Source: Mytilus edulis (Eukaryota). From it: a DNA stretch of 64,000 bases. The notes beneath the pieces were generated by a model that saw nothing but the letters and a program-made list of their open reading frames with translations, did no database searches and was not told where the DNA came from. Made by a program: the position numbers and the translations under genes. Shown here piece by piece: positions 5,089 to 45,544 of the stretch. How positions within the stretch are numbered: the first letter of the stretch is position 1; every line of letters begins with the position of its first letter. The stretch covers positions 6,944,001-7,008,000 of the forward strand of contig NC_092351.1 in NCBI RefSeq assembly GCF_963676685.1, given 5' to 3'.

Positions 5089-8000
5089 ATGGATATGATG
5101 CTCACCTATTTCCTGTTAGCCAGTCTGGCTTTTGTTTCAATTGGTAAGTATACATAGAGATCGACATAAAACAGTTATATTAAATATTCAATACGACTGG
5201 TCTTCAGATATATAAATAGATTTATGTATTATCATTTATATTTGCATTTTTTTGGGCAACTGCACATATAGCTACACGATGCACGACACTTATGAGTCAA
5301 CCACTTAGAGATAAATGCACCAACAGATGGAAATCACTTAAAATACTCATTATATTAATACAGTGATGCATTTCACTGTAAGGCATACACAATAAAAAAT
5401 GGCAATAGCTCAATAGAATAAACACCTTTAATTTAATATGCAATAGAAATCATAAAAGACGGTTCTTACTGTACAAAATCTATAATGTATGCATGCTCAT
5501 AGCATGCATAGCATATATGTGCACTCTGAAAAAATAGTGGACGATGAAGTGAGTGAAATGATATACTGTATATGGTATAACACATCCTGTATGTTGAGCT
5601 CTAGATTTTCTTTTGAATCTTGTGTTGTTGGGTTGCTGTTTAATTTACCCCATGCCTTCTTTTATTGAAACACTAAATAATGTTATATAATGTTGTTGGT
5701 CCATAAGGTATAGAACCACTAATTCGGGACAGGTCAGAAAGAACATAAGAAAGTAGTACATATTTTAAACAGAATAGTTCCTACGCATAGCTGTAACTAT
5801 CAGTTAGTATTTTGATAAATTTGGTATCAAATAAAAACTTTAAAACTTGTGATCAATGCAAGAGCTTTGTTGAAAGTTTATTTGGAATAGTACAAACATA
5901 TAATGAAATTATGATAAAAGGGCACATTTGCCCTGTTGTTCAGCCGGTACGACGTACATGTTTTTGAACTACCAAACTTCTGGGAACCAGTGCGCTCTAA
6001 TATGCAATAAGGGTGTGTTGAATTTTTCAGAATTCAGGATAGAGGATACATTGTAGTTTAAACATAATATAACTGCCAGTTTATTTAAACTTAAAACACA
6101 AAAGCCACAAATACTTTAAATTGCAACAAAAACCATATTTGTATTAAACATTCCATTCTCAAATATCTTTTTTTGTAGACTGGGTGCCTAGCTGTGAGTG
6201 CCCCTCTGAATTTAGAAGATATTATACATACATATCTCTTTATTTTGTAGAGAACACATGTGGAGGTAAAATAGCAAAAATTTCTAACTCCAAGGTATTC
6301 AAAACGGAATTTTCCTTAATAATTGGCAAACTAACTGTCATATTCCTGACTTGATACATGTATTTCCTTATGCGTTTCCCATTGAAATGAGTGGAGATGA
6401 AAGATATATATTTTTATTTTTTATTTTGTAGAGGGCGCCTGTGAGTTTCCCGCTGAATTGAGAGGCTATGATTGGTACACGACTAGTAATGGGAAAGTAA
6501 CAATACCATCTGATGGCAGTACTATAGTAAACTTTGAATCAGCAATACAGAGCGCGACGTTTACTTTAACCTGTTCAGAATATGACAGTGACACAGACCG
6601 TTATATTAGCACGTGAGTAGAAAGTATTCTAATAGGGATTCAAGACTGTCTATTGTTGCTTTTAACTTAACAATCAATATTTTAGGTGTCATACCACCAA
6701 TTAAAAGTCCCTATCTGTTCAACCAAATTTTACAATTTTCACAGCTTTCTAAATATTTTACCTTAAGTTTAACTTCATAGAAACCAGGTATATCCTGAAT
6801 CGTACATGTATCAGCTTTCTACATGCCAATTTTCAACAGATGTTTAAAATCATATACAAAAAGAAAAGGTCTTCCGAATAGAAGTAACACTAAAAATAAC
6901 CCCTGGTTTTCTGGAAATCTTAAATAAGTATTACTATGGAGTGCATTAATCCTCAATTTTGAATGCAAACTCATAAACAAGTAAAATTAAGCTCAAAAAG
7001 GTGGCATATTAAAGTTTAATTTTTATGGTGTGAAGAGAAGAGTTATACAGGTATAATACATTCCCGCGTCTTTCTTTAAACTCAAAGTTAATTGTCTGTT
7101 GGCAAAACTTGAAATGTTAATGGTCTATTCCATGAGAGAATTTAAAATTTTTAAGAAAACAAAACAAATGTCTAAATTTTTAACATTGTCAATTTAAACC
7201 CTGATTTGTACTAAACTGAGTCGGACACACTGTTCGTACGCACTGTATTATACACTCGACTGCGGCGATCATACTACCAAATAAACTCATCATAGATACC
7301 AGGACTAAATTTTGTATATATGCCAGACGCTCGTTTCGTCTACAAAAGACTCATCAGTGACGCTCGAATCCAAAAAAGTTAAAAAGGCCAAATAAAGTAC
7401 AAAGTTGAAGAGCATTGAGGACCAAAACTCCTAAAAGTTTTGCCAATTACAGCTAAGGTAATCCATCCCTGAGGTAGAAAAGCCTTAGTATTTCAAAAAT
7501 TCAAAATTTTGTAAACAGTTTAAATAGACTAAATTTTGCATATACGCCAGACGCGTTTCGTTTTATTATTTAGTGTATTGTATTTGCGTTTGTCGTAGAA
7601 TTTTAAAAACGTTAAAAAATTGTTGAAAAAACATTTGAAGCATTTGTTAAAAAGCAATACTTTTCGTGCATGCAAATGTCAAAATTTCATCCCAAATTTC
7701 ATTTCAGGGTACAGTTTAGATTGTTCGGTGCAGTGGACAATTTCAAAGCCTTTTTCTGTATGAAGTTTACCAAAATAACGTCAATGAAGTATATTATGAC
7801 GTATGACGCAGGTAAGTTCATTTGTACATTCAGACATATGGCATTTCTATTCCAGATTGTTGTGGCTTTGTATTCATGACACACGACGTATGATACATTG
7901 CCATGCCGTTCGCGATTCCATATTGAAATCTGTATCATACAATGTCATATCCTATGTGATACCCTATCATAGTCTACATAATATTCCAGCAGATTCGACA

Positions 8001-11000
8001 TGGTCTCCGAGCATATTACACTTGACAGTATCGTACCTGAAACCATGGTATATCTTACTCAATACCGTGTCATATCCTTCATTAAAACTTAGTATATTTC
8101 CTTTTTGAAACTCTAATATATCCTTGTTGATACCCTGAATAATTGTTTTACATATGTACATTGTTCTCTGACACTCTGGAATATTTAACTTGATAACATG
8201 ACATATATTTATGAAATCATTTTACAAATCCTATATATGAGTAATGATACACTGAAATATTCTTCATTATACTCTATCACATATGCTCCTTCGCTTTTTT
8301 GTGTGTTTTTGTTGTTGTTGTTGTGCATGTTATGTCATGGATGGATGGATTGTTCATATCCTTTTTGGCTCACCGGAGCCCGAAAGGACCCATGTGTGCT
8401 TATGCCATCACTTGGCGTCCGTCGTTGTCCTTCGTCTGTCGTCGTTAACTATTTCAAAAAAAAAATATCTCCTCTGAAACTACTGGACCAAATACCTTCA
8501 AACTTTCACTTAATGTTCCTTAAGGTATTTAGTTTATAAAGTATATCCGGAGTTTTGATCCATCGACAAACATTGCCACCATGGCTAAAAATAAAACATA
8601 GGGGTCAAATGCCATCGAATTGGTAGTTTTAAAAATTTTTTGCAGTTTTTGTTATTCACTTGAATATTATCATAGATAGATATAAAATGTAAACAGCCAT
8701 AATGTTCAGCAAAGTAAGATCTACAAAAACTTTAATATGACCAAAACTGTCAATTGACCTCCTAAGGAGTTATTGCCCTTTAAAGACAGTTTTACGCAAT
8801 TTATTTATCAAATTTGCTAATATTTAAAAAAAATTTCATCTGAAATACAGGTGAGCGATTCAGGCTCTTGAGAGCATTGAGAGCCTCTTGTTATATTTGT
8901 TGATAATGTGACATATCCAATTTAATACCTTACAAAATATCCTAGCATGTCCTGCCTGGTACATGTACATGTACCCTAACCTGGCTTACAAAATATCATA
9001 GAATATCCTACCTGATACCCGAACATAACTTACAAAATACCACAGAATATCCTAATTGATTGCAAGACAAACCATACAAAATATCATAGCATTTCATACC
9101 TGATACCAAGGCAAACCATACAAAATATCATAGCATATCATACCTGATACCAAGGCAAACCATACAAAATATACTAGCATTTCATACCTGATACCAAAAC
9201 ATACCTTACAAAATATTATAGCATTTCATACCTGATACCAAGGCAAACCATACAAAATATCATAGCATTTCATACCTGATACCAAGGCAAACCATACAAA
9301 ATATCCTAGCATATCCAGACATACGTTGAAAAAAATGCCCAAGCATATCAATACTGATACTCAAACACCCCGTACAAAATACCCCAACATTTCCTACCTT
9401 ATACCAAAGCACCCTACAAAATACCCTAGCATATCCTTCCTGATATTCAAACATACCATACAAAATACCATATTATTGCATAGCAATATTATATTTTCCA
9501 CTGAAAGTAACCAAAAGTTAGCATGCAATAAATTCTAATATTGCACTAGTGCAATATATCGTTAAAATTTCATGACGTTATCAACGACAAAATCTTAGTT
9601 TAAACCCATTTTTACTGTCAAATATTATATTGCTGTACAATAAAAGGGTTATTGCATGAATATTGGGGATATGTCCCTCGTAGAACATATATTTCATTCA
9701 TTCATTCATTTCTTTATTTCCTATCAAGAGATTCAATGAACAACATATATTAACAAAGTTTACAAAACAGACAACACAATACAATATTACACTATTTACA
9801 ATAAATTAACTATAGCATATTACCAAAAGAACATTTTAAGACAATTGCTCTCACTAACGACAGTTCATGTACTAGCACGCTACTGTATTATCCTTCTCGT
9901 TACTCTGCTATACTCAGCAACACAGAGTGCAACGTATACGTGGCACAAACTAAGAAAACTGTCAGTGTCGATATTTACTGTTGTTATGTGCTTGCCTAAA
10001 AGAATGCAGTATAACTGTTCATCGTCGTATGAATACAGTTCGACAAATAATTGCAATGGAAACCTTTCAATAATGAAATCCCACCATGCATCTCTGCTGA
10101 TTGATTGAGTACCACAAAAACTACAACACGCATGTACGTACACATCTAGACCTAGTTGAAGTTCTCAAGTCTAAAATACGCTTGACTATAAAGTGCTGAA
10201 AACAATTCAACGTTGGTATATCGTTTGACTTTAAATTTGTCCACATTTCAGAACCATACAGTACAGTAGGTAACACAATAGACTTATACAGTTAAAGTAG
10301 AACGCATGGATTTGCTGACTTGAGACATATACCGTTAAGAGCGAAAAATAATTGCGAATATCAAATTCTACTCGGGACAATATTTCCCAATATTCATGCA
10401 ATAACCCTATAGTATATACTACCTGACACCTACACATCCCAGCATATCATACTTGAGACCACAATTAAAAATATTTTGGTTTACCCAAACCCTACCCAAG
10501 GTTGAGACAGTGGGTAGGTAGGTAGGCATTTCTTTTTTTTTTTTTTTTTTTTTTTTAAGAAATTTACGTATCAGCTGTTTATTAGTCTTCATGCCAAATC
10601 TGATTAAAAAAAACTTCCTCAAATCAGGACAATAAAAGAATTTGAGTAGGCAGCTTTTTTCTGGGTATTTAGGGTTTGGGCAAACAACCCAATTCTTTTT
10701 TATGGCCTGATATCAAGACATATTTTACATGATACCCTAATATATTCTACATGATACCCTAATATATTCTACATGATACCCTAATATATTCTACATGATA
10801 CCCTAGTATATTCTACATGATACACCATTTGTATCTTATATAGACTTAGATAATTAAAATAAAAATAGATACATCTTGATATATAGTTTATTTATACTTT
10901 TATGAGTACTTATGATTTTACATACTCTTTACTTGTATCTTTACATTGTTCAAATCCGTGCGTTTCTCAGGCTGAGAACGATGTCTATCAACTTAATTCG

Positions 11001-14000
11001 TTTAATGTGTACTTATTGCTGCTTTAGTCTGATGGATCAGGGCCAATTTATGAGTTGTAAAATGGCTTTGTGTCGATTTACCTTTTGTAAGTTATTTCTT
11101 TTGTTTCGTAATGATCTATTAGTCAGATGAGTTATTTGCAACTGAATTTACAGTTTATTCTTTTGTTGTGCCGTTAAAAATTGTCTTATGCAAAATGGAC
11201 GAGAACTCACAAACTTGTTCAAGCACTACACATTATTGGTTTGCCTATTCCGAGTCAATGGGTGCCAATTGTTCGTGTCTGTCGTATTTTTTATATACAG
11301 TTCATGTTGCTCAAACTTCAGTTTTTGTGCAGTGTTTTTTGGACTGTCTTTTCATTGTTTACTATGGCAAACAATGTCTCTAACGAATTCCAATGCCTAT
11401 CTACACATACAGTATTGTACATGCTATCACATTCACATATACCAAGCAATGCACAAATGATCTTTTAAACTAATTGATCATTACATCACAAATATATAAG
11501 ACTATGTGTGGATAATTCGTCTTGTGTCTATGCTATAAGCCACGAATGTAATTAACAGCAAGAGTTCGAGCATTTGATTTTAAGAATGCAATAAGGGAAA
11601 AACAGTGAACTTGTTAATTTGTGAAATAACAAAGCTTTGTTCATGCAGAATCAGTAGACTTGAATTGAAAAGTCTGTTTTTTTGTAGCGGGACGGCTGCA
11701 GTGCAGGCGATTTGGTGTCACGATATCACAGTAGCATGGGTTCGAATCCCGGCGAGGGAAGAACCAAAAATTTGCGAAAGCAAATTTACAGATCTAACAT
11801 TGTTGGGTTGATGTTTAGACGAGTTGTATATACATTATGTACACAGCCATGTATCACCATCATTGATGGCGATCAGATGGATACATCGGTTGTAGGGTTG
11901 TCACTGACTCAGACGTACTTATGAATATAATTATTTTCTGTGACTGTATCTTACATTAATTTGTAGGATCCTTTACTATAGATAATTTAGCTGATCTGTA
12001 ACAATAACATATATATATATATATATAACTATCTTTTAAAAAGACGCAGCAGAGCTGCTTTGAATTCTGCATCCAAAAAAGCATAGACAAAGGGATTAAC
12101 AATACTGTTGACAATGAATAAATGGTAGAATGGAATGACGATAGCCAGCTCTGTCGGATGTAGCCCCTCCCAAAATGTTGGGTTTAAACCTTCTAACACA
12201 ACAATTGATCCAACGGGGAAATAACATAGGAGAGAAACGGAGGTAATGATGATAAACATGATGGAGAAATTTCGTTTTACACGTCTGTTTCTTTTCTCCA
12301 AATGATCTTCCTTTACTTTATTGCTTACAATAGCAACTTCTTTTTGTCCACTACTAGAATCAGTGCATACGTTTGATACTATTTTATGCTGTTTCTTTGA
12401 ATTCATTTCTATTAGGTTTCCGTTCCTCTCAGAGGTGTTTTCTGCCTTACACATTGTGCCCAAGTTATTCTCATTTTCTCTGCTTTCTATATCTATATTG
12501 ACTTGACTATCTGAAACAACATCCTTATCTTCTATAGGTGTATCAGTGTTTTCTTCAGATCCCGATTTTGGGATAGTGCTGTTCGACGCTTGTGTTTTCT
12601 TACATTTATCGGACTTGAAATGTTGGAATATTTTTAAACCAACTTTACCATAGAGAAATGTTAATGCAACAACAGTTAAAATCATCAAAACCCCAAACAA
12701 TATTGCATAAGCAAATCCAGCTTCATAATAAGCATACTCTTTTAGCCTACCACACCGGCTCCCATACTTAATTCCATCTACAAGAAAGTCATTTGATCCA
12801 TATAAGATAAGGTATGGAAAACATAGAATAACCGAGATAATACAGATGGATACAACCATCATTCGGCGAACTTTTAAACTTAAGGTATGGTCTCGGCAAA
12901 TTTTGAAGTATCTTTGTACAGCAATACATTGTAAAAGCCATAAAGATAAGGAGGCCGGTACGGTGAGACCGCAGAATGTTAGTTTACATAAAATGTTATG
13001 TGAGAACTTGATCTGATTTACGTCCCAGATAATAGCTGCCACCGAACACACAACGGACGCAAACATGTCTGCAATTGCTAACTTTGGAATGAAATATCTT
13101 TCATCTGAAGTACCTTTCATCTCATATCTATAGACCAATAGAACTACGAAATTTCCAATAATTCCAACGATGATATACAGCACAAGTAATGCCATATCAG
13201 GTATAAGGTTTCTTTCAACTAATTGTATCCAGTCTTCTACAATTTTGTCAGTCATATTGAGCTCTTTTGCATCTGAATTCCCCGGCATGCTTCCGTTAAC
13301 ATTTGTCAATGAACGCATGGTTACTTTGGTCCACAGTGTCTTAGAAACAAAAGAACATGCATAAAATACAAGACATTAAGAAATTAAATCTTAAAACGTG
13401 AACGTTGTCATGAGATAAGGGCTAAACAATGTAGAAAATGTATGATTGTTTGCTTCGCATCACGGTGCGAAGCTATTAGTTTCAGTCGACATACACGCCA
13501 TCTTGAATTAATTACTTAATATCACATAAAGGTTCTGATTGGTTGCAATATGATGCGGCTGCGATATAGCAACAGCTATTGGCTTAAGGTGGTACCCAAC
13601 ACTTTCACTAAAATTAATTTGGCTCGTTTAATTTTCATTAAATTTTGTCAAATTATTTACTTTGACACTTTAACAAAAATATAAAAATTTAAAAAATTTT
13701 GAACCAACCGTTTTGTCAGAAAAATTACACTGGTTATATAGCAATTTGACAAACACCAATTTTGATCATTGAGAAGCTTAATATTCTGTTTACAACACAA
13801 CGTAATTAAAACGTTTAGCTGACTTTACAGAGTTATCTCCCTGTAGTGTTAGGTACCACCTTAAACGAGATAAAGAATAATTTGCTTTTCCCGTCCGAGA
13901 ATGAGACATCAAATGCCCGAAAATTTACTATGTGTATTTCAGTTCCGATCAACTGTTATTAATTCATGTTATTTTTTTTCATGTTTTTTTCATGCATATA

Positions 14001-26000: not shown

Positions 26001-29000
26001 TTCTAGTATAAAACATTGCACGCATGCTTCAAGGCATGCACATTTTGAGAAGTATGTTATTTTTCATCAAATATACTCATTTTGGAAGCATCTTTGACAG
26101 TCTTTTTAGTCCATTGTAAAACTCGATATCCAGAAAAGCGTAGATGATTGGATTAGCGATGCTATTGATAATATACGATCGATAGAACCATACCACAATA
26201 ATGAGCTCCATCTGAGTAAGATTATCCCAGAACTCCGGAATAAACCCTTCTAACATCACGATTGCCCCAACTGGCAAATAACAAACTATAGATACACTGG
26301 TTACTACTACAAACATCAACGAAAACTTGGTCTTAAACCGCCTGTTTCTTTTGTTACGGGTATCTTTTCTGCCACTTGTTGAAGGTTCCTTTTTGGAAAC
26401 TGTAGACTCCACTGATGGTAACTCTGGTTTTATGTTCTGTGTATCAGATTTGTTGTTTCTCTGCAATGCTTCATCATTATGATGATCTGTTGATGGAAAG
26501 TTGACGTCTTCTTGGCTGATTGAGTTAATCTTTATCTCGCATGTCTTTGCTGGGGTATCTTCTGTTCGGTCATTTGATTTCTTATCGGATAAGCTTCTCG
26601 TATATTCTCTAGACGATTCTTTCATTTGCAATTTCTTCTTTTTTGACTGAGAATTAAAATACCCGAATATTGTGCAACCGATTTTGCCATAAAAGACGAC
26701 TAGACATGTGCAAGTCATTTGCATAATAACTCCGAACACAATGGAGTGCGCAACCGCAACATAGTAAACATCTTCTCGTTTGAGTCTGCCACATCGTTGA
26801 CCCCCTGATCTTCCTTCAATAGAAAACTCATTGATACCGTACGTCAATGTGAATGGTATTGCCATACCTATTCCAAGGATGGCAGAAACACCAATCATGA
26901 TTCGGCGCTGCAACAAGTTCAGTTGATACCTGCGACATATCAATAAATATCGTTGGAATGCAATGCAAAGGAAAAGGAACAGACAGAATGATGCGCTGCT
27001 TGCAATTGAAAACAGGATGACTTTACAAAGGTTATTACTTGTAAAACTCGATTGTAGGGAATTCCATATTGTACAAGTTATACAACCAACGATCGTCGCC
27101 AAGATATCTGCCCCAGCTAGAACTGGAATAAAGTATCGTTCTGTAGAAGTGTCCTTCATTTCCAATTTATACACAGCCACAACAATAGCATTCCCTATTA
27201 CTCCTATAACCATGCAGACGGCTAAAAACACACTGTTACCAATCAAGTACGTCTCAACAACCTTTGGCCAGTCTTCAAGGTCGTTTGTTGCATTAAGCTG
27301 CATATCTTCTATGACACTTTCATTAGCTTCCATGATGGAGGTGTTCATTCTTATATCGCATATATACACAATATATTAGTCTGTGCCTATAAAATTAAAT
27401 TAAGAAAAAACTAGATATATAAATGATTAAATATATGCATCAAGAGACAAATAGTTAAAGTCTAACTTCGGATATGACTGTTATCCTCTTTTATCTGGAA
27501 AATTATATAATAGCAAAGTTCAGTAACACAATTGATGAATAAGGTACAGAATGAAAAAAAATCAGTATAAATAGTTACATACAAATTGATAAATGCTAAA
27601 GTTTTTTTTAAATATACACTTATATACATACTTTACCTTTGGGTGTCTTAATGCAATCACATGTATTGGTTGTTTGGTTGTAAGTTAACTTATTCTTTAT
27701 ATAACCCTCGCATCCTTCACGTCAGAGAAAGGTGGCTATCCAATAAATGACTGATTTCATAATTGAATTTGATATATGATAGTTGTACCATCTTAATGGA
27801 GGTAATTGTCTCGTCAATAGTGTATAAATTACGAGAAACCACTAATAACAAAACCCTTGAAGATAACGGAAGAACTGGTATAGCTTTTAGATACCCTTGT
27901 ATTATATAACTATAAGCTTGCCATCTTATATTTATATAATTTGTTTATGTGAAAGAATATTAAAAAATCAACAAAAGGCACTAATGAGTAGGAGTATGAA
28001 AGAAAGAGAGGCAAAAGATACCAAAGGGATATCATGAGTTGAAAATAGTCAATGGCATGGCAAAAAAATACAAAACGACCAAACAACAATCAACAGTATA
28101 CGGAAAAAAAACAACATAAAAAACAAGTACTGAGCAACACAACCCCACTAAAACCCGAAGAAAGTATGTGTGGTTTTTTATTTATAAATTTATCTTTTAA
28201 TCAAAAATATGCAAACCTAAATCATGCCTTGTATACAGTGAGAAATTGAAATAGTTACAGAAAAGAAAAGAACATAAATGATGATCTACATTATGATAGA
28301 TTTTAAAGTTTTTATCTACATACTTTTACCTGCCTGAATCTAATCACATTTATAGTCTGTAAGCGCTTTGACAAGAAAGGTTGTCTCCACCTTATTTTTA
28401 ATTTACATTGTTACCCATGCATCCTTTACGCCAGAGAAGGATTTATCCCCAGATAATTATTTGATATAAGATACTGAAGTTCGATTAATGAAGGTGTTAT
28501 TCCCAGAATATTATACTAAAATCCATCAATATAAAGGAAGTATATTTTTGACATATCATATAATTTCGCTATGCAAACGGATTAGAGAATGATTTCAATT
28601 AGTGTCTATTATTAATGAGTAATTTCATCTTTAATTTGACATCTGATAGAAAAGGTCGTGTTATGAAGTCATTATTGTCATAGTAACATTCTGAAACCCA
28701 AGAAAATAACGGAATTATATGTTGTACATTATCTCATGTAAACTTGTCATCAAGCAGTTACATAACATATTATTGTAATCAGAGATGTCTCAAGTTTAGC
28801 AAAACAATATTATAACTGCAAATTAGCGTTAGAAAATGTTTGTTTGTCCCTCAACGGGATTCGAACATCTGCATCTGAGACATCGATCAGCATGTCAACA
28901 TAAATCGTCACTGGTCTACGACCTTTCACTTAACGTATTATTTAGATATTGGTCGATGCACTTTGTATGAATGCGTACGATAAGAAACTTCTATCGTTTT

Positions 29001-35000: not shown

Positions 35001-38000
35001 GTCATTGAATATCCAGTCCTCATTGACTATAGTTGTAGTGTATATTATACTTTAAAGATAGCAAACAGTTGTCATTCAACCGTTCAGAACTTTTTTTAAA
35101 GCAGTACTTCACATGTATTTACAATGATTAACATTGAAGTGAAAATAATTTAAGTTTGTCACAACGAAACAACTTGAGCGAAAAACGGATACGGCTCTTG
35201 TGAAAAATAACAATTGAATGTTTTGTATGCATTTAGCATCTTATGCAAAATCTAGCTCTCATAATAATTGAACATCTGTTAATTTTAAACTGGACATAAC
35301 GCGTCTTACAGACACACATCAGCGACAGGACCATCGTACATCAGCGAAATGATCAAAACCATCGCACTTCAATAGGGTTGTCATCGCACTTCAGCGTCCC
35401 AATCACACATGAGTCCTATATATACTAGTATACGGTGATTTCATTAAAATTGTACAGTATATACAATTATTGTCGAAATTTATCATGCTATAATAATTGT
35501 TGAATTCTTATAGAATTGAAAGGATTTGCAGAATAACATCATTTATATAATGTGTTGCATGTGCCTATGTGTGATTCGCCTATAAAAAATCAAACCCAGC
35601 TGACAACTTTAAAAAACGATATAAATAAAAATGTATATAAAACGCGGGGTATTGAGAGGGGACCTTTCATACATCTTTTTTCGTAATTCTATATAGCTGC
35701 ACACTTTTTTTGACAGATATCGATAGTACATCTTTAGTTAGAGTAATTGTGATCAACAATGTCACAGGAACCCTCACACCAAGTCAAGCATGCGCATTAA
35801 CTAGTTCACAGCCGGTGGGTACACAGGAATTACTAGTTCGTTCAGGTATGTTTAACACAAAGGTTTAAATATGTACATTATTAACGCGATATAATGGGAG
35901 AAGCTGATTCAGAATATCTTAGTTGTAAGCCCCACTACCACTAGACCACGATCGCACTACGCTCACCGCGTTCTTAAATTTATTCAGATCGTAGTGAGGT
36001 CGCGGTATGAGCGTCATGAAAATGTTAATTTTTGTTGTTTTCACGATGATACTACATGTACGTCCTCATTACGCTTCTACAACGATCCCGCTACGCTTTA
36101 AGCTAGGTTTACACTGCCGATCAGATCAACTCGATCAAACCCGATCAAGATAAACTAAGTGATCGGGAGACTGGTCTGATTCAATCGACAAAAATGTTCG
36201 GGATAGTCTACTTTACTCGTCATCGATCTGACTTTCTACCCGATAGTTTTTGACATGGCAAAAACAATCGAATAAGGACCAAAAAGCAAGCCACTCGAGA
36301 AGAGATCGAGAATTCGTCGAGTAGCGGTCGAATTGATCGGGTAAAGATCGTGTAGAGATCGAGTTTGGTCGGAATACAAACAAATACCGATCAGTACCCG
36401 ATCATTTCGACCTTTGCTCGACTAAAGTCCGATTATTTCCAGATTAACTCGACCAATGTCCGATCTCTTACAGATCACTTCGACTTCTATATTTATTTTA
36501 TCCCAGACCAACTCGACCAATACCCGATCCCTTCGCGACCACATTCGACCACTCTTCGATCTCTACTCTCCTATACACGAGAACACATGACTGTTACACG
36601 ATTCCCTAAAAGTGTGTGCAGATCTGATTAACTCTCATAACTCTGTCTACCCAAAAATATATTGGCAACATCATATTTAACTGTACAATACAAAAATTCC
36701 CCTATCTATATTACGTGTGTTTTCCTGTTTTGAATAGTTTTACACCAGTAATTTTGGGGCCCTTTATAGCTTGTTGTTCGGTGTAAGCCAAGGCTCCGTG
36801 TTGAAGGCCGTACATTGACAACGACGTAAGGGATGAATATCCTGCAATTTTGGCACCGGCGGATTTTTAAAATACGAAAGTAATTGAGCAATAACATTCA
36901 GTATTAGACTGTTGACGACTAAGTTATCTTTCGAAGTTGGTTTATAAGAACATCGATCAAGATTATATTTACCTGTTTTATGGGATATTTTCTGTTTTCT
37001 CTGTCCGTATTCCATTCTTACACTAGCGGTACAAACAGTTCAGCGTGCACATGTTTAGATAATTTGTTTCTAACATACTTTTGCAAAGTTTGCATAAACC
37101 TATTTTTACGCGTAATAAGTTCAAATAACTAAAATTGTGCATACCCGATTATTGCTACGACCCATATACGATCAGGTCGATCTGGTATGGTCAATATCAG
37201 ACTGAGATCGTTAAAAGGTGAATTTGGTCTAGCTAGTCGAGTAAAGATCGTATAAAGATCGTGAATGGATCGGAATTATCGAATAAGTATTCATTTTGTT
37301 GTCGGGATGGAGTCCTGATGGGGTCGTGAATTGTCGAGTAAAGGTCGTGTACAGTCGGATGGCGGTCGGGTTGAAGTCGTAAACAGGCCCGATCAAGATA
37401 TTGGTTGAGCTTGGTCGTGGAAATTTGGACAATCGGGTCCATCGAGTTGATCTGATCAGCAGTGTGAACCTAGCTTTAACCACGTTCTCACCACGCTCTT
37501 TCTACGATTATCACGATCTTACTACGCTCATCATGTTCCCACTACGACCATACCACGAGTTGTCGGATTGCAACACGATTTTACCACGCTTCTACTGCGA
37601 TTATAGCACGATCTTACCACGATTACAGGTGTAATACCACCAAATCATGGTACATCACATCCGGATGCATACGAAAGTAGGTCGAAAAAAATATTCCCTT
37701 GAATTTGACAGTTGTAGGTAATTAATCCTACATTTTATTGCAGTGAAAACATTTCTGTGTTATAAACATATGTCTTGGGTATTTCAAAACACCATTATTT
37801 TTTATTTGGGATTTCTATAGAAGATTTTGTAATCTTGAGGTTACATGGTGACTAAACCTTGTACACAGATAAAATAAGGGGAGACATTTGATTTGGTTAA
37901 CTTCCAATGATGGTTATTTTCTTATATGCAATGAAATGTTATGTGCATTTTTTTCTATAGAACTGGACAGGATAAAACTTTACTCATGCCAAGTATTTCT

Positions 38001-41000
38001 GTATTTGAAACAAAGATAAATTCTGCACATTTTTTTGAAAAGTGCAAATTTAACAAAGACTAATAGGGGGAAATCAATGGTGGTATTACACCTTAAACTA
38101 CGATCATACCGCGATCTCACTAAGTTCTTAGCAATAATGTCAACATCGTGTTCCTTATAAATACTGTTCCATTCCTTCTATTTCTGATTAATACGTATAT
38201 TTCTCAGAAACAACACAGTAGTGCCATCAACATCTACCAGAACACTTGGGCGTGGTGGTAGAGGAAGATGTTGAGGCTGAGGGAGCTCTGAAATTAACGA
38301 ATCCTGATCCAGCAGAGGTGTCGGACCGACTAATCAAACCTGAATCACAACCTATTGCTGGTACATCAAGCTCAAATGACGATGTTTTAGTAAATGATAG
38401 CAGGGATGACACAGATGTATCAAGCATGGTTGTGACGCCGTTAGAGAAAAAGGACAAGAGGTTCAAATTACAAACAAACAAACTAAACCTTGAGAGCTTT
38501 TATAAATTTTATGATGGTCGTAGTATAAACGTAGTCAGGGCGTAAGAAGAGCGTGATAAGGACAGAATGGGTGTGCTAGGATCGTACGATGGTATTGAAC
38601 AGCGTGGTACAAACGTGGTTTACTAGTAGTCGTAATTGAAGCGTAGTTGGTGGTGGTGAGAACGTGATGGTCGTAGTGAGGTCGTTATAACGTCGCTGTG
38701 AGATCGAAGCGCAGTCTCTCCGAATATAATCACGCTTTTGCTACGCTCTCGCTACAATGGTATTGCGACCTTTGCGATCTTACCACGACTTTACTGCGCT
38801 CTAATATAACTACACTTCTTTACGACCTGATTTCGCCACGACCGCACCACGATTGTTTTGAACATGTTCAAAGTTGGCCACGCTCATCACGATCACGAAG
38901 ACCTCACCACCACCGTACTACGACATTACTGCAATCTGCACGATCGCACTACGATTGTCAAAATTTTCATTTTTTTCACAGATCGTAGTGCGATCGTGGC
39001 CTAGTGGGACTGCGGTATAACAAAAAGGGTAATATTTTTTCTTGATTATAAAATTCAGTCTTTTTGGTAAAATGAGGCTCTACTGTTTAACTAAATTAAA
39101 AAAAAACACTGAAAAAGGAAAAGACGAAAGCAGCACTATATAAATCTCAAGCGTCCGAAGCGTATTTCTTTATTTCACCAGGAACGCTCAAAGCCAAAAG
39201 CCAAAGATGCATTAGAACCGAAACTTTTAAAGAACTATTTGACGAAGTCACTGACAGCTTGCTCATCCGATTTCTTGTTAATAATGTCTCGAATGTGAAC
39301 TTAATATAAAGTTAACACTAATCGTATTTTATTTATATATTAATAACACAGTTTAATAGCAAAGTATTTAATTTTAGATTCTGTCTCACCGTCAGCTATA
39401 AGCTGTCCAACATCTATCCAGTATTATTTAAGTGCCACCGTTCAGTCCAGTGGGTGTATTGAGAACTATATTGATGGGGCTGCTAAAGCTACACAGCATA
39501 CATACACATATGCATCATGTGTCACTTCAAAGTACACGTGTAAGTTATATGAGAGTGTGTCTGGGTGTTTATTAACTAACCCTTAATTCCAAAGTCTCTT
39601 CATCAACAGTATTATGCAGTAATGGATGTTTTGTTTTAATACGGATTATTGCTGTTTTATCCATACAAATATTTCAAATTTATGTGTAAAAGCACTTAAA
39701 TCGTATTCGACTTAAAGAGGTAAATCCGGAGTTTTATGGTTATTTTTTCACAGCGTGTTGGGAAGTTGTTGCAAACATATTTTTACGTTTATATTCCAAG
39801 TAATATCTTAGTTTTCTTTCCAAAACCATTAATTTATAAAATATAGTGTTTTCGATTTTACCAGGAGGAATGAAGTTAGAAATGTCAGAGCCCGGGATGT
39901 ATGATTACGTAACGAGCCAAATCACCGAAAAATAAAATAAAAAATCAAACACGATAACTCTATTAGGTCATCCTAATTCAAGTTACACAAATTTTTCATA
40001 AGTTCAGAATCAGACATAATAGTTTCCGAATTTTTGAATACACGAAGTTGACGATTGTTTGTTTCATCTTCTTTTCTTACTGCTACTAATTGTAAATAGT
40101 TACTTTGAAAATAATAACTTCACTCTTCACCCCCCCCCCCCCCCCCAAAAAAAAAAGACCAACAACAACAAAAATTTATTATATGAAGTTGGTACCCACA
40201 CAACGTCATTTTTGGATAACGATCATTAGAGATCTTGAGGTTAAAAGTTTGGAAAGCCAATAATGTTTTATGTTTTGAAATCAAAGAAGCCAAGAAAACA
40301 GCATTAACAAAATAGCCCCACATGTTCATGTAAACTCTGTTTGACGGACTTGTAACCTATATACTACTTTAAAGCACAACTGCACAACATTGTATGTATC
40401 GAAAATTTACAAACAAATATCATTCACAATATGCAGTGGCAAATATATCATGCTTATTCAGGAAAATTTGTCCTTAAATATGAGTTGTGTAAGCGATGTA
40501 TGCATTGAAATCATGATATTGGTTGTGTGTCTACCCTTAGTTGATTTAGTGGCCTATCATTCACCAAGAACACGGTTCATCTAATAGGCATTGCTACAAT
40601 GTATGATTCATATTGTGAATGATATTTGTTTGTCAATTACCTTTTCGTTGAGTTATGAAATATTTATTACTCTACGAAAAGGAAATGATGTAACTTTCAA
40701 AAGCTTTGCAAAATTTACAAAATACAAGGTATTAAATTTTGAAGATGAAATATGAAGCACAAAATAACATGGCAAAGGAACAATGCTTTAAATTGTTTAG
40801 TCAAACTTACAAGTTACTGAGGTTCAATTGAAATAATGGAATAGACGTAACTCACAGTAAGATTAAAACGCTGACGATATGTATAGATAATGTTGCCTTA
40901 TTTATTCATCGATAAATGCTATATATGACAACAAATGAAATAAGAAAGTCATAGTTTCAATAAGTTACAATTTTGAAATTTTTCTAATAGAATTTGTTAA

Positions 41001-44000
41001 CCTAAAAACATTAAATAAAAAAAGAAATACAAAACAGACAAGCAAAGGCTATTAACTGAACCCTTTGAAGAAAATTTAATAGAGAGAAAAGATGAAAAAT
41101 GATTTATCTAAATAAATATGCCTTTGCTAAAAATTATCATTGTTTTTATGCCCCACCTACGATAGTAGAGGGGCATTATGTTTTCTGGTCTGTGCGTCCG
41201 TTCGTCCGTCTGTCTGTCTGTCTGTCTGTCTTTCTGTCTGTCTGTTCGTCCGTCTGTCCCGCTTCAGGTTAAAGTTTTTGGTCAAGGTAGTTTTTGATGA
41301 AGTTGAAGTCCAATCAACTTGAAACTTAGTACACATGTTCCTTATGATATGATCTTTCTAATTTTAAAGCCAAATTAAACTTTTGACCCCAATTTCATGG
41401 TCCACTGAACATAGAAAATGACAGTGCATGTTTCAGATTAAAGTTTTTGGTCAAGGTAGTTTTTGATGAAGTTGAAGTCTAATCAACTTGAAACTTAGTA
41501 CACATATTCTCTATGATATTATCTTTCTAATTTTAATGCCTAATTATATTTTTTATCCAATTTCATGGTCCATTGAACATGGAAAATAATAGTGCGAATG
41601 GGGCATCCGTGTACTTTGGACACATTCTTGTTAATATATATATTTTTTTATAGCTGGTGGTAAATTTGATTGTATGTATTCAGTCACAGAAGAACCATAT
41701 ACTTATCTGACTGTATTTAACAATGATACAACGGTTGATGAATCTGCAACATTTAGATATTTATGCTATGCAAGTATACTTTTGTTTTACATCGAATCTA
41801 CAAAAAATGGCGATTAAATCTCACAAATGCATCAAAGTACTGTCAATAATTTATACTATTCCCTATATTTTTTCTGATAGTGTGCGAACATTTCATGTAA
41901 CAATTTTCACAATACTTGATTGTTAAGAACCAAATACAAACGTTACACTATACCACATAACTTTACAGTTTTCGGGATGACACCCGGCTAAAAAACATTA
42001 TTGCGGTGAACCATTTTTTGAACTAAAAAGTGAAAAAAGAAAACTCCATGGTTTAGTATTTCCGCTTCAGATCCTCCCCTGAAAAAAACCAAACAAAACA
42101 AGAAAAAAAAATTAACTTGTTCAAATCTAGAGGTTATAAACATGAATAATTATTATCTTTCTCTTACATGCATTCAAATTTAGAAAATTTTATAATAGGT
42201 AATTTGGAGTTATGGTCATGTTGTATACTATACATATCATCCCCAAATCTGTCAACCCCTGCAGACACCAATTCGGACGGCAACTGATGGAGTGACCGTT
42301 GTAGCTTCTAATAGTAAGTATGACATATTTAAAAATATAAATAAAAAATGAAATATTAAACATATGTTCTAGTATATCTTTTCACTATAGATTTTTTGGG
42401 GTATCTTCCTAAATTGGTTTTTAAGCATAAATAAAAGTAAAACTAACCAAAATGTGAATGATGTATATAAAAACAGACGAATACATTTTTTTCTTCTTCT
42501 AGATATGTCAAATGATGTTGGTAGCCAAATAGCTGTTGGCGTAATACTGAGTCTACTGCTGCTTGCCTTGATTGTGTTGACTATTGTTTTGTTAGTCCTT
42601 TTCCTGCTAGGACAAAGGCGTCAAAAAGCAGTCAGAATTATCGAAGAGAAAAAAGTTAGAAAAAGCAAATCAGAATCTAAATCAAAGTCTTCTGATGGAA
42701 AAGCAAAACATGATGAAAAGAAAAAACACAAGAAAACGAAAAAGAAGAAGACAGACAATGAGCAAAAAACGGATCAAAACCAGAATATGAATGTTTCTTT
42801 AAGACGAACAGAATCCATGAAAGAACAAGTGAGTAATGGTTTCACGATTCACACTTTTCTGTTTTCTGTAATCTCCTGGTTAATTTACAAGTACAGCGTT
42901 ACCACATTTTTTTATAATTTGACATGACGTTTAATGTTTATGCGTCTGCATACATGTATCAAGCAGTCAGTATTCTCTTTTGATTTTTTCCAATTTTTGG
43001 CATATGTCATGTATTATAGCTTACTAAAAAATGTACACAGTATGCGTTTTGCTCATTGTTAAAGGCCATACAATCTTCTATTATAAGTTATATAGTTTGC
43101 TTTAGGTCCACTACGGATCCATAGAGGATAAGTAAAATACATAGGGGATTACTCTATTTATCTGTAGGTATTCAGTAACGAACCGTTTACAAACATTATT
43201 GCATACATGACTTTTGCATAAAAAAAACCCAGTGAAATACAAAAACACAAACATACAACGCGCCGAACTAGGAGTACTCAAAATTACTGAAATCTATTTC
43301 AATCATAAACAATAATCAAACCATATTTTCCAGACAACAAATAGTATACAGTACGATTCGAAGGGATTTGGTGTACAAAAGTTATACTTGTAAACAGTAT
43401 TCGAAAAAAAATGACCTCGCGCAATATCAAAACATAAGTATCGACAGGAAGTATGCAGGATGTAAATGTTTTTACCTTTATACAACATTGGGATACTTAT
43501 AAAAACCAGCTCATTAAATGAACAGTGCTTTTGTTACATATATGTATTTCCATTGATAATTGAAATTATCCAAGAAAATAAAGAACATTAAAAAGTAAAA
43601 TCACAAACATACTGAACTTAGAGGAAAATCAATTCGGAAAGTCCATAATCACATAGCAAAATCAAATAACAAAACGTATCAAAAACGAATGGACAAGAAC
43701 TGACATATTCCTGACTTGGTACAGGCATTTTCAAATGTAGAAAATGGTGGATTAAACCTGGTTCTATAGCGCTAGACACAATAAATAAAATAGTCAAAAT
43801 ATGGGTACATCAGTCATCATCAGTCATCATAAAGTAAGACCAAGAGGTGTAATACGTCAACGTTTCTAACGGTATCCTTTTTACATGTACAACGTCTCGT
43901 TGTGTGAATCAGTTATGCATATGACATTGAATAATTTCATTATTTGACAGGCTAAAGAAAAAAAACTAAAATGGACAGATTTTGTTGGTATTAGTGGAAA

Positions 44001-45544
44001 TGTAAATGGTTTTGATAAACCGGTGAGTAATTATAAACCTTTAAATGCGATAAATCTTAATCACTTCTTAAATCTGGATATACATTATGAATATAGTACT
44101 TAAGTACATTAATGGTACCAATTATTCTGTATATGTACCAAAACTTTAAGGTAAATGATCAAAAGATGATCTATTCATTATTTAAAGTGATGCATAAGTT
44201 TGAACAGTTCGAATTTTGAAATCCGTTGAAAAAAAAAATAAGAAAAAAAAGCGTGGAGGGAAAAATATAATTTACTAAAATGGATCACAATATTATGTCT
44301 AAATAAGTTTGAAAAAAACCTGTTAAGCCTAATTGTTACCGAAAAGCATAATACCATTTAAAGTATATATATCTTGGATTCAGTATAAAGCAAGCATACC
44401 TGGCCACGTCCACTTGTATTTTTGTTCATCTGATAAGTTAAGCCTTTTTCAACTGATTTTTATAGTTCGTTATTATGTTGTACTGTTATACAACTGTCCC
44501 AGGTTAGGGGGGGGGATCCCGCTAACATTTTTTACCCCGCCACATTATTTATAAATGTGCCTGTCCAAAGTCAGGAGCCTGTAATTCAGTGGTTGTCGTT
44601 TGTTTATGTGTTACATATTTGTTTTTCGTTCATTTTTTTTTATATAAATAAGGCCGTTAGTTTTCTCGTTTGAATTGCTTTACATTGTCTTATCGGGGCC
44701 TTTTATAGCTGACTATGCGGTATGGGCTTTTCTCATTGTTGAAGGCCGTACGATGACCTATAGTTGTTAATGTCTGTGTCATCTTGGTCTCTTGTGGACA
44801 GTTGTCTCATTGGCAATCATACCACATCTTCTTTTTTATATGACATAATCAATATTTCAGATAATGTGTAACATACAGTTCTGTAGCTATACACGTAGAT
44901 TTCTGTGTGATTGTATTTGGTGCGTCCGAATCGCTTTTCTAAATTTAATGTGATCATGAACGCTCCGAGCCTTCCCCCAAGAAAAAAATAATTGAAAAAA
45001 TAAAGATGTCTACATATTCGCAATTCAACAAATTTGCTTAACGTTATGGGACTTTTTCAAATCACACAAAAATGGTAAGGTAGAGTTTTAATTAGCAAAG
45101 AAAAACAAATTTAACATAAAAATACCGCAATCCGGGAAAAATTCTAAACGGAAAATTCCTTAGCAAAAGGCAAAATCAAAAGCCCAAACACCTCAAACGA
45201 ATGGAAAACAGCTGTCATATTCCTGACTTATATATACCAATGTACATTTTAAGCAATGGCAGGTACGATGGGAACAACACAAGGATCCTGATTGGACTAA
45301 ATCTATAAGTTATGAAGATTCTGAGACGGCGAGGAGCACTGATTCTATTACCAGTACAAGTAAAATAATATGGGTGACGCCAGAGAAAGAAGAACTTGAA
45401 ACAGCTAGATCATTATGGGAAAGGGTATACCGATTGTGGTATGAACCTAGAAAAACTATTCCGGATAATAAATTTCAAGAAATGCAGAAATTGACAAAAC
45501 TTTCGATGCCTAAACATGTCAGATTCAAAGGAAATGATAAATGA
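5089..45544 (+). CDS. 10-exon gene for an uncharacterised Cys-rich type I membrane protein (signal peptide, Cys-rich ectodomain, one TM helix, long Lys-rich cytoplasmic tail), about 516 aa; host gene of the GPCR cluster
   Basis: Exons: 5089-5143 (MDMMLTYFLLASLAFVSI), 6432-6612 (GACEFPAELRGYDWY...LTCSEYDSDTDRYIS), 7708-7811 (VQFRLFGAVDNFKAFFCMKF...), 35717-35845 (IDSTSLVRV...QACAL...ELLVRS), 39378-39539 (AISCPTSIQYY...), 41654-41769 (GKFDCMYSV...FRYLCY, GC donor), 42199-42313 (VIWSYGHVVYYTYHPQICQP...), 42503-42828 (TM IAVGVILSLLLLALIVLTIVLLVLFLL plus basic tail), 43951-44022, 45254-45544 (TGA). Total 1551 nt, open throughout, intron phases 1,2,1,1,1,0,1,0,0. Every acceptor is pyrimidine tract + AG. 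Exon-by-exon similarity to the - strand paralog. Confidence 0.8.
7322..7361 (-). ncRNA. Minimal type I hammerhead ribozyme motif within a Penelope-like/retrozyme repeat end (repeat about 7280-7560)
   Basis: The - strand reads GTCA-CTGATGA-GTC-TTTTGTA-GAC-GAAAC-GAGC-GTC-TGGC: core CUGAUGA and GAAA, stem II GTC/GAC, short stem III, GUC cleavage triplet, stem I GTCA/TGGC. Confidence 0.7.
8362..8892 (+). mobile_element. Helentron-associated (HINE/DINE-1-like) non-autonomous element
   Basis: T-rich start, sub-terminal IR GCTCACC / GGTGAGC, CGTC-type microsatellite, 3' hairpin GGCTC...GAGCC. Homologous to 20221-21015. Confidence 0.65.
8990..9470. repeat. 44-bp minisatellite, degenerate at the edges
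   Basis: Unit ACCATACAAAATATCATAGCATTTCATACCTGATACCAAGGCAA starting at 9071, 9115, 9159, 9203, 9247 and 9291. Confidence 0.9.
10727..10822. repeat. 22-bp minisatellite, about 4.3 copies
   Basis: Unit CATGATACCCTAATATATTCTA. Confidence 0.9.
11686..11830 (+). mobile_element. tRNA-derived SINE-like repeat
   Basis: B-box GGTTCGAATCCC at about 11739-11750 with an A-box-like TAGCGGGACGG upstream; no complete cloverleaf. A related reversed fragment lies at about 28848-28868. Confidence 0.55.
12029..13318 (-). CDS. Rhodopsin-like (class A) GPCR, peptide-receptor-like orphan; GPCR-1, 429 aa
   Basis: Uninterrupted ORF with 7 hydrophobic segments. GN in TM1, LAIAD in TM2, Cys at the top of TM3 (LCK) and in ECL2 (RCGRL), IAVQRY at the end of TM3, CYFP in TM6, NPFVY in TM7, helix 8 (EFKAAL). 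Confidence 0.95.
   Translation of the reverse strand: MRSLTNVNGSMPGNSDAKELNMTDKIVEDWIQLVERNLIPDMALLVLYIIVGIIGNFVVLLVYRYEMKGTSDERYFIPKLAIADMFASVVCSVAAIIWDVNQIKFSHNILCKLTFCGLTVPASLSLWLLQCIAVQRYFKICRDHTLSLKVRRMMVVSICIISVILCFPYLILYGSNDFLVDGIKYGSRCGRLKEYAYYEAGFAYAILFGVLMILTVVALTFLYGKVGLKIFQHFKSDKCKKTQASNSTIPKSGSEENTDTPIEDKDVVSDSQVNIDIESRENENNLGTMCKAENTSERNGNLIEMNSKKQHKIVSNVCTDSSSGQKEVAIVSNKVKEDHLEKRNRRVKRNFSIMFIIITSVSLLCYFPVGSIVVLEGLNPTFWEGLHPTELAIVIPFYHLFIVNSIVNPFVYAFLDAEFKAALLRLFKR
13588..13860. mobile_element. 273-bp MITE with TTAA TSD (Kolobok/piggyBac-type)
   Basis: TTAA|GGTGGTACCCAACACT ... AGTGTTAGGTACCACC|TTAA; TIR matches at 15 of 16 positions. Confidence 0.85.
20221..21015 (+). mobile_element. 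HINE/DINE-1-like element, same family as 8362-8892
   Basis: TTTTAGCTCACCTGGCC... start and ...GGTGAGCGACACAGGCTCTTACGAGCCTCTAGTTT end. Confidence 0.7.
23189..24324. mobile_element. TTAA-flanked MITE containing a nested second MITE
   Basis: TTAA|AGGGGCTCCTGGGTATAAA ... TTTGTACCCACGAGCCACC|TTAA; imperfect TIRs. Confidence 0.75.
23522..24101. mobile_element. Inner TTAA-type MITE
   Basis: TCAA|AGGAGTAGGTCCAGTAAGACC ... GGTCCTTACCGGGCCTAGTCCT|TTAA. Confidence 0.75.
25629..25795. repeat. 20/24-bp minisatellite, about 8 copies, downstream of GPCR-2
   Basis: Unit TACTTGATATTACCACAGTA; the first two copies carry an extra TACA. Confidence 0.92.
26077..27348 (-). CDS. Rhodopsin-like (class A) GPCR; GPCR-2, about 423 aa
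   Basis: GN, LAGAD, LCK, IAFQRY, RCGRL, CYLP and NPIIY motifs; N-terminal sequons NTS, NES, NAT. The ORF track starts at a GTG (27369). The first ATG is at 27348, with an in-frame TAA just upstream and a splice acceptor at 27387-27388. Confidence 0.95.
   Translation of the reverse strand: MNTSIMEANESVIEDMQLNATNDLEDWPKVVETYLIGNSVFLAVCMVIGVIGNAIVVAVYKLEMKDTSTERYFIPVLAGADILATIVGCITCTIWNSLQSSFTSNNLCKVILFSIASSASFCLFLFLCIAFQRYLLICRRYQLNLLQRRIMIGVSAILGIGMAIPFTLTYGINEFSIEGRSGGQRCGRLKREDVYYVAVAHSIVFGVIMQMTCTCLVVFYGKIGCTIFGYFNSQSKKKKLQMKESSREYTRSLSDKKSNDRTEDTPAKTCEIKINSISQEDVNFPSTDHHNDEALQRNNKSDTQNIKPELPSVESTVSKKEPSTSGRKDTRNKRNRRFKTKFSLMFVVVTSVSIVCYLPVGAIVMLEGFIPEFWDNLTQMELIIVVWFYRSYIINSIANPIIYAFLDIEFYNGLKRLSKMLPK
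27637..27725 (-). promoter_or_regulatory. Putative TATA promoter and short non-coding first exon of GPCR-2
   Basis: On the - strand: CRE-like TGACGTGA (27717-27724), TATAAA (27696-27701) and donor AG|GTAAAG at 27637/27636, which could pair with the acceptor at 27387-27388. Confidence 0.45.
29690..29870 (+). repeat. Abundant interspersed SINE-like repeat; other copies at about 17820-17995, 33905-34070 (-), 43590-43775 (-), 45120-45230 (-) and 56460-56670
   Basis: Shared core GTACCAAGTCAGGAATATGACAGTT..GTCCATTCGTTT..GATTTTGCCATGTGATTATGGACTTTCCG. Confidence 0.85.
30953..32341 (-). CDS. Rhodopsin-like (class A) GPCR; GPCR-3, 462 aa
   Basis: GN, LALAD, LCK, IAVQRY, HCSKL, CFIP and NPLIY motifs; long third intracellular loop; C-terminal CC after helix 8 (possible palmitoylation). 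Pyrimidine tract + AG acceptor at 32366-32367. Confidence 0.95.
   Translation of the reverse strand: MSHNSTAIPVSDIFDWQRDTIPDFVTLSLYIIIGLVGNTIVILVYKFHLTKASEERYFIPILALADLIACVVSSSLGIVWNYHQENFTNVALCKIVYYFMGNTTYMSIFLLLCIAVQRYLKICRKRTLSLRCRRIMIFICLVCAVCFTIPLCLTYGIVHFKKNGHVITSHCSKLKYGNKIFGALYGIVVSSFIFLVYLSFIFLYGKIGYAIYHHFKTHQFKHTHAHYPKDSTPTNSKPSKSEESYEDRAQSENSETGNNLTFQTFGDTNKGHVRKSSLHDMISDKNMKAKGLQNIAFPDVDLVRFQKIKNTSMTVDFRTVDNGVMTDDQSIDSLQITCPMSDISSDSLSTTKTYSTTLSKPSKKKHRKRKRSRRLMNKFSFMFMIVTTVFLICFIPVSTILTLEGFYPDFWEKLSSSQVNIVIWLYRTFIINNISNPLIYAFMDIEFRNAAKKLFKQCCGTM
33019..33561 (-). mobile_element. 3' fragment of an L2/CR1-clade LINE
   Basis: Degenerate translation ...RIFYHKSLLMYKSKHQLSPKYLSNL...YNTR...KSSFSFSDPKLWNSL...FK is typical of the CR1/L2 ORF2 C-terminus. 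It ends with AATAAA and an (ATT)n tail. Confidence 0.8.
34085..34170. repeat. 10/20-bp tandem repeat
   Basis: Alternating AACATAGTGT and ACTATAGTGT units. Confidence 0.85.
34455..35420. mobile_element. TA-flanked TIR element (MITE-like)
   Basis: TATATAGGAGTC...GCGATGGTGACGCTGAAG at the left is mirrored by CATCGCACTTCAGCGTC...GAGTCCTATATA at the right. Confidence 0.55.
36101..37475. mobile_element. Nested Harbinger-like MITE with TTA TSD
   Basis: TTA|AGCTAGGTTTACACTGCCGATCAGATCAACTCGAT ... ATCGAGTTGATCTGATCAGCAGTGTGAACCTAGCT|TTA; 35-bp TIR with 2 mismatches. Confidence 0.88.
37628..38092. mobile_element. Nested TTAA-type MITE
   Basis: Perfect 15-bp TIR GGTGTAATACCACCA / TGGTGGTATTACACC followed by TTAA; the left TSD is degenerate. 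Confidence 0.75.
41143..41632 (+). mobile_element. HINE/DINE-1-like element of a second family, just upstream of host exon 6
   Basis: Sub-TIR ATGCCCCA / TGGGGCAT, (GTCT)n microsatellite, two internal tandem units of about 169 bp, 3' hairpin GTGT...ACAC. Confidence 0.7.
44395..44840 (+). repeat. Abundant interspersed repeat; partial copies at about 15260-15850, 17340-17610, 36705-36820 and 62545-62745
   Basis: Shared motifs GCCTGTCCAAAGTCAGGAGCCTGTAATTCAGTGGTTGTCG, TTGAAGGCCGTAC and GTTGTCTCATTGGCAATCATACCACATCT. Confidence 0.8.

Follow-up and report, generated by a model that had tools for sequence, protein, structure and literature searches.

A conserved mussel gene with a probable nest of three antisense receptor genes in its 27.9-kb third intron

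Introduction

Genes lodged within the introns of other genes are a well-known arrangement and have been described in both insects and vertebrates. In one of the closest cases, the TipE/Teh genes are clustered in a single intron of CG18675, and these genes are co-regulated with one another but not with their host (PMC3240667). According to work cited in that paper, gains of nests greatly outnumber losses, and in insects GMC oxidoreductase genes are clustered within one large flotillin-2 intron. In vertebrates, LRRTM genes lie in the introns of alpha-catenin genes (PMC3933685). Here, we describe a locus of this kind in the mussel Mytilus edulis. The window (that is, the whole stretch of DNA analysed: 64,000 nucleotides (nt), NCBI RefSeq assembly GCF_963676685.1, contig NC_092351.1, positions 6,944,001 to 7,008,000 of the forward strand) contains a conserved plus-strand gene, hereafter the host, whose third intron very probably houses three independent, intronless genes for rhodopsin-type G-protein-coupled receptors (GPCRs) on the opposite strand. 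We consider this an ordinary nested-gene locus, a new example of a familiar arrangement whose gene models are already public.

The mussel nest resembles the TipE/Teh cluster in that several homologous membrane-protein genes occupy one intron of an unrelated, conserved host and are kept across related species. The two differ in content and in depth: the TipE/Teh proteins are ion-channel auxiliary subunits, conserved across insect orders and with measured expression, whereas the mussel genes encode GPCRs and their conservation is indicated only within Mytilus. Likewise, the GMC/flotillin-2 case shares the family cluster nested in a single large host intron, but its nested genes encode enzymes, while those in the mussel encode receptors that do not form a clade. 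LRRTM genes are also membrane-protein genes in host introns, and their origin and loss have been traced on a phylogeny; there, however, one nested gene is found per host paralog and the pattern is repeated, whereas the mussel nest is found in one member of the host family. Finally, the three receptors resemble the lineage-specific expansions of intronless rhodopsin-type GPCRs in bivalves, since they match the 7tm_1 family, carry an NPxxY motif and are members of a family for which the genome has at least 132 matches. They differ in that the automatic names given to their relatives disagree and that their nearest vertebrate matches are of the PAR2 type.

The host gene and the receptors in its third intron

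Local joining of exons found through splice signals and homology gives a plus-strand host gene at 5089-45544, with ten exons, a coding sequence of 1,551 nt and a protein of 516 amino acids (aa). This translation is identical, residue for residue, to the Mytilus edulis RefSeq protein XP_071124673.1 (P0128), named only 'uncharacterized protein'. All nine acceptors are AG, and the donors comprise eight GT and one GC. The parts of the host are as follows.

5089-5143, plus strand: exon 1, 55 nt, with the start codon and signal peptide; donor gtaagt; 100% match to residues 1-18 of the M. galloprovincialis protein P0105
6432-6612, plus strand: exon 2, 181 nt, where the cysteine-rich ectodomain begins (GACEFP..LRG.DWYTTSNG); weak DUF7043 match, expectation value (E) 0.061
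7708-7811, plus strand: exon 3, 104 nt, ending in phase 1; donor gtaagt
7812-35716, plus strand: intron 3, 27,905 nt, housing the three receptor genes
35717-35845, plus strand: exon 4, 129 nt, with an ag acceptor; symmetric phase 1-1, cassette-like
39378-39539, plus strand: exon 5, 162 nt; its joint with exon 4 is seen in RNA contigs of runs X1 and X10
41654-41769, plus strand: exon 6, 116 nt, with a GC donor (gcaagt)
42199-42313, plus strand: exon 7, 115 nt
42503-42828, plus strand: exon 8, 326 nt, with the transmembrane helix and a lysine-rich cytoplasmic stretch
43951-44022, plus strand: exon 9, 72 nt
45254-45544, plus strand: exon 10, 291 nt including the stop, with the conserved tail WQ.RWE...DP

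The three receptor genes all lie wholly within intron 3, antisense to the host, and their open reading frames (ORFs) contain no stops and are intact. Each spans the whole of the 7tm_1 profile (positions 1-260 of 260) and scores well above the curated cut-off of this family (Pfam PF00001, 30.5 bits).

12029-13318, minus strand: GPCR1, intronless ORF of 429 aa; 7tm_1 E 7e-26, 91.7 bits
26077-27348, minus strand: GPCR2, intronless, 423 aa from the first ATG (at 27348; open frame to 27369); 7tm_1 E 1.3e-22, 80.9 bits
30953-32341, minus strand: GPCR3, intronless ORF of 462 aa; 7tm_1 E 1.9e-26, 93.6 bits

The arrangement thus agrees with a preliminary description of this DNA made from its letters, which had placed three antisense GPCR frames in a 27.9-kb intron of a ten-exon gene ending at 45544. 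That description also had exon 3 ending at 7811 and the next exon starting at 35717, both in phase 1, as the splice sites and the RefSeq-identical model now confirm. Its start for exon 4 was right as well; the exon is to be corrected to an end at 35845 and a length of 129 nt. No further GPCR fragments were found in the 64-kb window, and about 2.5 kb of intron 3 is repeated elsewhere within it.

How such a locus works can be outlined simply. The host is transcribed from the plus strand as ten exons; its intron 3 has grown to 27.9 kb and contains three GPCR genes on the opposite strand, each presumably with its own promoter; and the host pre-mRNA would be spliced across them. The opposite orientation of the receptors rules out any splicing shared with the host. 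A functional tie between the host and the receptors is not needed to explain this arrangement.

One intron is unusual in its signals: intron 6 (41770-42198) is a GC-AG intron with donor gcaagt, and its junction (LCY|VIW) is set by the RefSeq identity and by the oyster orthologues. Intron 1 contains, at 6172-6222 and behind an ag acceptor, a weak exon-2-like fragment (FVDWVPSCECPSEFRRY compared with FVSIEGACEFPAELRGY, tblastn E 1.9), which may be a decayed partial duplication of the exon or may be due to chance.

Continuity of the host across intron 3

A gene that crosses 27.9 kb occupied by other genes calls for evidence that its two halves belong together. Several kinds of evidence point this way. 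First, the phases agree at the join (exon 3 ends in phase 1 and exon 4 begins in phase 1), and only one complete set of host exons exists in the whole genome. Second, full-length orthologues of 516-517 aa are found in M. galloprovincialis (P0105), M. trossulus (P0125) and M. californianus (P0126), and P0105 covers all ten host exons at 89-100% identity. Third, orthologues from five oyster species (490-497 aa) are collinear with host exons 2-7 and 10, with ten cysteines of the ectodomain invariant in the comparison, and in these proteins the exon 3 sequence directly abuts that of exon 4.

A further line of evidence comes from RNA-type contigs, compared with the genome over 35705-41704. They belong to four public runs, from four studies and with four organism labels. 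In all four, the match to the genome begins at 35713/35714, that is, at the exon 4 acceptor. The contigs of X1 and X10 pass from exon 4 into exon 5 at 39376/39378, and this joint identifies them as spliced RNA. Upstream of exon 4 the four contigs hold another 185, 307, 154 and 71 nt, respectively, which are unlike the adjacent intron; non-intron sequence leaving the genome at this acceptor argues that exon 4 is internal. The X10 contig (1,427 nt) fits within the 1,551-nt coding sequence of the host, with a start about 33 nt past the ATG. The genome match ends one base earlier in three contigs than in the fourth, an offset that would be explained by the end of exon 3, which reads GCAG in M. edulis versus ACAG in an M. 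galloprovincialis allele (P0127, ...YDTD). From the public model, the collinearity of the orthologues and the geometry of the contigs, we infer that exon 3 is joined to exon 4 in RNA.

These results have to be set against the older annotations, which split the host into an N-terminal protein of 125 aa (VDI49853.1) and a C-terminal one of 370 aa (CAG2223206.1). Taken at face value, they describe two partial genes: exons 1-3 would end at 7856-7894 and yield a 125-aa secreted product, exons 4-10 would have their own promoter, and the receptors would be intergenic. Indeed, VDI49853.1 (P0127) ends in ...YDTD-CCGFVFMTHDV, reading window positions 7856-7894, and CAG2223206.1 (P0124) begins inside exon 4. 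However, the P0127 model requires an intron of only 44 nt (7812-7855), which is implausibly short, and the 71-307 nt that the RNA contigs carry upstream of exon 4 leave the genome precisely at its acceptor. Moreover, the oyster proteins and four RefSeq models from Mytilus unite both halves, with exon 3 directly before exon 4, and the phases match (1 to 1). Two separate genes are therefore a most unlikely reading of the locus. The C-terminus of VDI49853.1 (an M. galloprovincialis entry that carries the UniRef name 'Lipocalin') in 7856-7894 is probably an ab initio artefact, although this end may also belong to a short secreted isoform.

Another possibility is that the receptor block has been wrongly placed between the host halves during assembly, a concern in a genome that is repeat-rich and heterozygous. 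We found no positive support for such an error. On the other hand, the C-terminal host model and GPCR3 bear consecutive accessions on an independent scaffold of an older M. edulis assembly (CAG2223206/207), an independent 41.5-kb M. galloprovincialis contig bears both GPCR2 and GPCR3 (VDI38444/445), three other chromosome-level assemblies list host and receptors consecutively, and the window itself is free of any N. An assembly artefact is, of all the explanations considered here, the least probable, to the point of being nearly negligible.

Three points weigh against a host that spans its receptors: the RNA comparison covered 35705-41704, on the exon 4 side of the 7811|35717 junction; older annotations split the gene, as described above; and consecutive accessions in other species speak for neighbourhood and are not proof of nesting there. 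On balance, the host as one gene that spans the receptors, with the flanking exons in one transcript, is supported. The main value of the locus lies in annotation: it shows why older mussel annotations split the host and why the newer, joined model is right. It also provides a clean example of a long intron that shelters members of a large bivalve GPCR expansion.

The host protein

Sequence comparison makes the host an uncharacterised type I membrane protein, conserved from mussels to oysters, with an ectodomain that is predicted to be distantly DUF7042/7043/7044-like. A Pfam search of the host protein returned no family at or above threshold. DUF7043 was matched weakly in five of nine host orthologues (best E 0.0014), with scores of about 14-18 bits where the cut-off is 27. 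A language-model feature search placed the ectodomain near DUF7042/7043/7044 proteins of molluscs and arthropods, with a score of 0.91 and 208 features in common, which is to be read as a lead only. AlphaFold2 modelling of the host from nine orthologues gave no usable model (mean predicted local distance difference test score 32, predicted template modelling score 0.19), the transmembrane helix being the sole confident part.

Exon 4 deserves separate mention. The equivalent of this exon is exactly what isoform X2 of Crassostrea virginica (P0008, 445 aa) is missing, while isoform X1 (P0012, 490 aa) has it, and such skipping fits the symmetric phase of exon 4. The exon may thus be an alternative cassette exon in the mussel host; it is present in all four of the mussel RNA contigs examined.

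Three receptors from separate lineages

All three receptors have the NPxxY motif (NPFVY, NPIIY and NPLIY, respectively) and QRY in place of DRY. Receptor proteins that are exact or 98% identical turn up again in public annotations and in Logan assemblies. NCBI lists the exact GPCR2 protein, which has orthologues in M. galloprovincialis and M. trossulus, and the exact GPCR3 protein, which has orthologues in four Mytilus species. Both are also present in a collection of 15 billion proteins, in which the exact GPCR1 protein had no match; GPCR1 may be unannotated, or annotated with another start, in the public genome.

Naming these receptors is less straightforward. The automatic names of their orthologues conflict (GPR34, D(2) dopamine receptor-like, cholecystokinin receptor-like), and their best vertebrate matches are PAR2-type receptors, with E between 1e-7 and 1e-4 and alignments that cover about 20-38% of the query. 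Orthology to the cholecystokinin, GPR34 or dopamine D2 receptors was considered and is not supported, given the clashing names, the weakness of the PAR2-type best matches and the mussel-wide expansion of the family. The three products are orphan receptors, to which no ligand class can be assigned.

The family itself is large. The genome has at least 132 matches (850 first-look candidates), most of them single-exon genes arranged in tandem clusters. On chromosome 8 (C8), loci lie at 10.91-10.93, 27.30-27.68 and 33.37-33.57 Mb, and others are found on C1, C3, C5, C12 and elsewhere. Several copies have in-frame stops and are likely pseudogenes.

The preliminary description had proposed that the receptor expanded in tandem within the intron. 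This part of its account did not hold. The pairwise identities among the three receptors are just 40%, 35% and 33%, and for each receptor closer relatives are found at other places on chromosome 8. In a tree built by maximum likelihood, the pair at 33.56 Mb joins GPCR2 with support 98/97; GPCR1 falls in the same six-member clade as GPCR2, which also holds a pair at 10.9 Mb; and GPCR3 sits in a separate clade with 56-57%-identical proteins known from public assemblies only. Monophyly of the three was recovered in none of 200 bootstrap trees, and constraining it costs 161 log-likelihood units (approximately unbiased (AU) test, p 2.7e-54). A recent local tandem burst is therefore rejected on the low identity, the lack of monophyly and the AU test together. 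The receptors are instead placed by the tree as old, separate lineages of a very large mussel-specific expansion. Either old lineages were gathered in the nest or copies moved between the nest and other loci, and the tree does not give the direction.

Paralog, host family and origin of the nest

A paralog of the host lies on the minus strand of the window, convergent with it.

54354-54551, minus strand: open frame of paralog exon 2, VDGVCSFPDELRGVW...
50719-50822, minus strand: paralog exon 3, 104 nt
49971-50718, minus strand: paralog intron equivalent to host intron 3, 748 nt, with no ORF inside
49857-49970, minus strand: paralog exon 4, 114 nt, phase 1-1, encoding D.D...C...LLVR

The preliminary description had used this gene as a guide to the join in the host, and the details on which it relied (exon 3 of 104 nt, the intron of 748 nt and a homologous exon 4 with the D.D...C...LLVR pattern) were all recovered. 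Over exon 2, the host is about 53% identical to the oyster proteins and about 39% identical to the paralog. This exon is thus nearer to oysters than to the neighbouring copy, which implies that the duplication is old or the paralog fast-evolving. A tblastx comparison of the host and paralog regions returned mostly repeats.

The two genes are not alone. Further host-family loci are found on C8 at 2.9, 7.05-7.15, 45.8 and 48.5-48.8 Mb and on C9 at 50.1 Mb. Three of these members (C8:7045536-7045673, 7092035-7092208 and 7148110-7148325) lie 40-140 kb beyond the window, and these nearby members indicate that the host and its convergent paralog belong to a local family cluster. In one other family member, only about 4.3 kb separates the exon-2-like from the exon-6-like match. 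In two further members, the samples taken upstream of the exon-6-like match (5.8 kb and 9.7 kb) contained no GPCR.

Only one member of the host family is known to carry a nest. It had been left undecided earlier whether the receptor was inserted into the host intron or lost from its counterpart; given the 748-nt paralog intron, the member with about 4.3 kb and the two samples free of GPCRs, gain in the host copy is more parsimonious than loss from the others.

Across assemblies, host and receptor orthologues with consecutive accessions sit on the same scaffold in four Mytilus species. In M. galloprovincialis the host (XP_076117166) is consecutive with GPCR3 (XP_076117165), as it is in M. californianus (XP_052089652 and XP_052089653) and in the older M. 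edulis assembly (CAG2223206 and CAG2223207). In M. trossulus the host (XP_063415670) is followed by GPCR3 (XP_063415671) and then by GPCR2 (XP_063415672-676). The comparison of synteny proposed at the outset thus returned the same neighbours across Mytilus, as an order of accessions and with no direct view of the introns. The nest appears to be older than the divergence between M. californianus and the M. edulis complex. A possible counterpart in the oyster Saccostrea echinata, where a host orthologue and a receptor share a 22.6-Mb scaffold, was dropped, as the nearest listed receptor is 367 accessions away.

Is there a functional link between host and receptors?

Another reading is that the nest is functional. 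The host could be an accessory partner of the receptors (similar to RAMP or MRAP), or antisense transcription could couple their expression, with selection holding the unit together. In favour of this, the host and GPCR3 (plus GPCR2 in M. trossulus) seem to be neighbours in four Mytilus species, and the host and receptor products are all membrane proteins. Against it, no second co-location of the host and receptor families was seen among the loci sampled in the genome, a survey that scored just the best receptor candidates and sampled 10 kb per host-family flank, and in Saccostrea echinata the two are far apart, as noted above. In addition, well-studied nests usually show no correlation in expression between host and nested genes (PMC3240667). 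Nests persist because their deletion is costly and need no functional link to do so (Assis et al. 2008, cited in PMC3240667). We found no sequence similarity between the host and single-pass GPCR accessory proteins of the RAMP or MRAP-like kind. A selected functional unit is thus very unlikely to account for the locus.

The proposal has two more specific forms. The receptors encoded in the intron might have the host protein as their partner or chaperone, or host transcription might gate the receptors through antisense interference, and the nest would then be a selected unit. If true, the nest would be a genomic pointer to an accessory system for orphan GPCRs in bivalves, and only a functional link of this sort between host and receptors would give the locus greater importance. 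We give this speculation very little credence: the prior for a functional link is low, and nothing in the present analysis supports one. The ordinary nest, i.e. a conserved host with three independent receptor genes in a long intron, remains the reading that we favour.

Repeats in the host introns

Rfam and transfer RNA scans of the whole window returned no match. Two intervals within the host introns, 41143-41632 and 36729-36819, stand out as repeats with very high representation in the RNA contigs. Their summed word depths lie between 10^4 and 10^5, and in all four runs both edges show sharp loose ends; the intervals have the look of abundant interspersed repeats that are transcribed.

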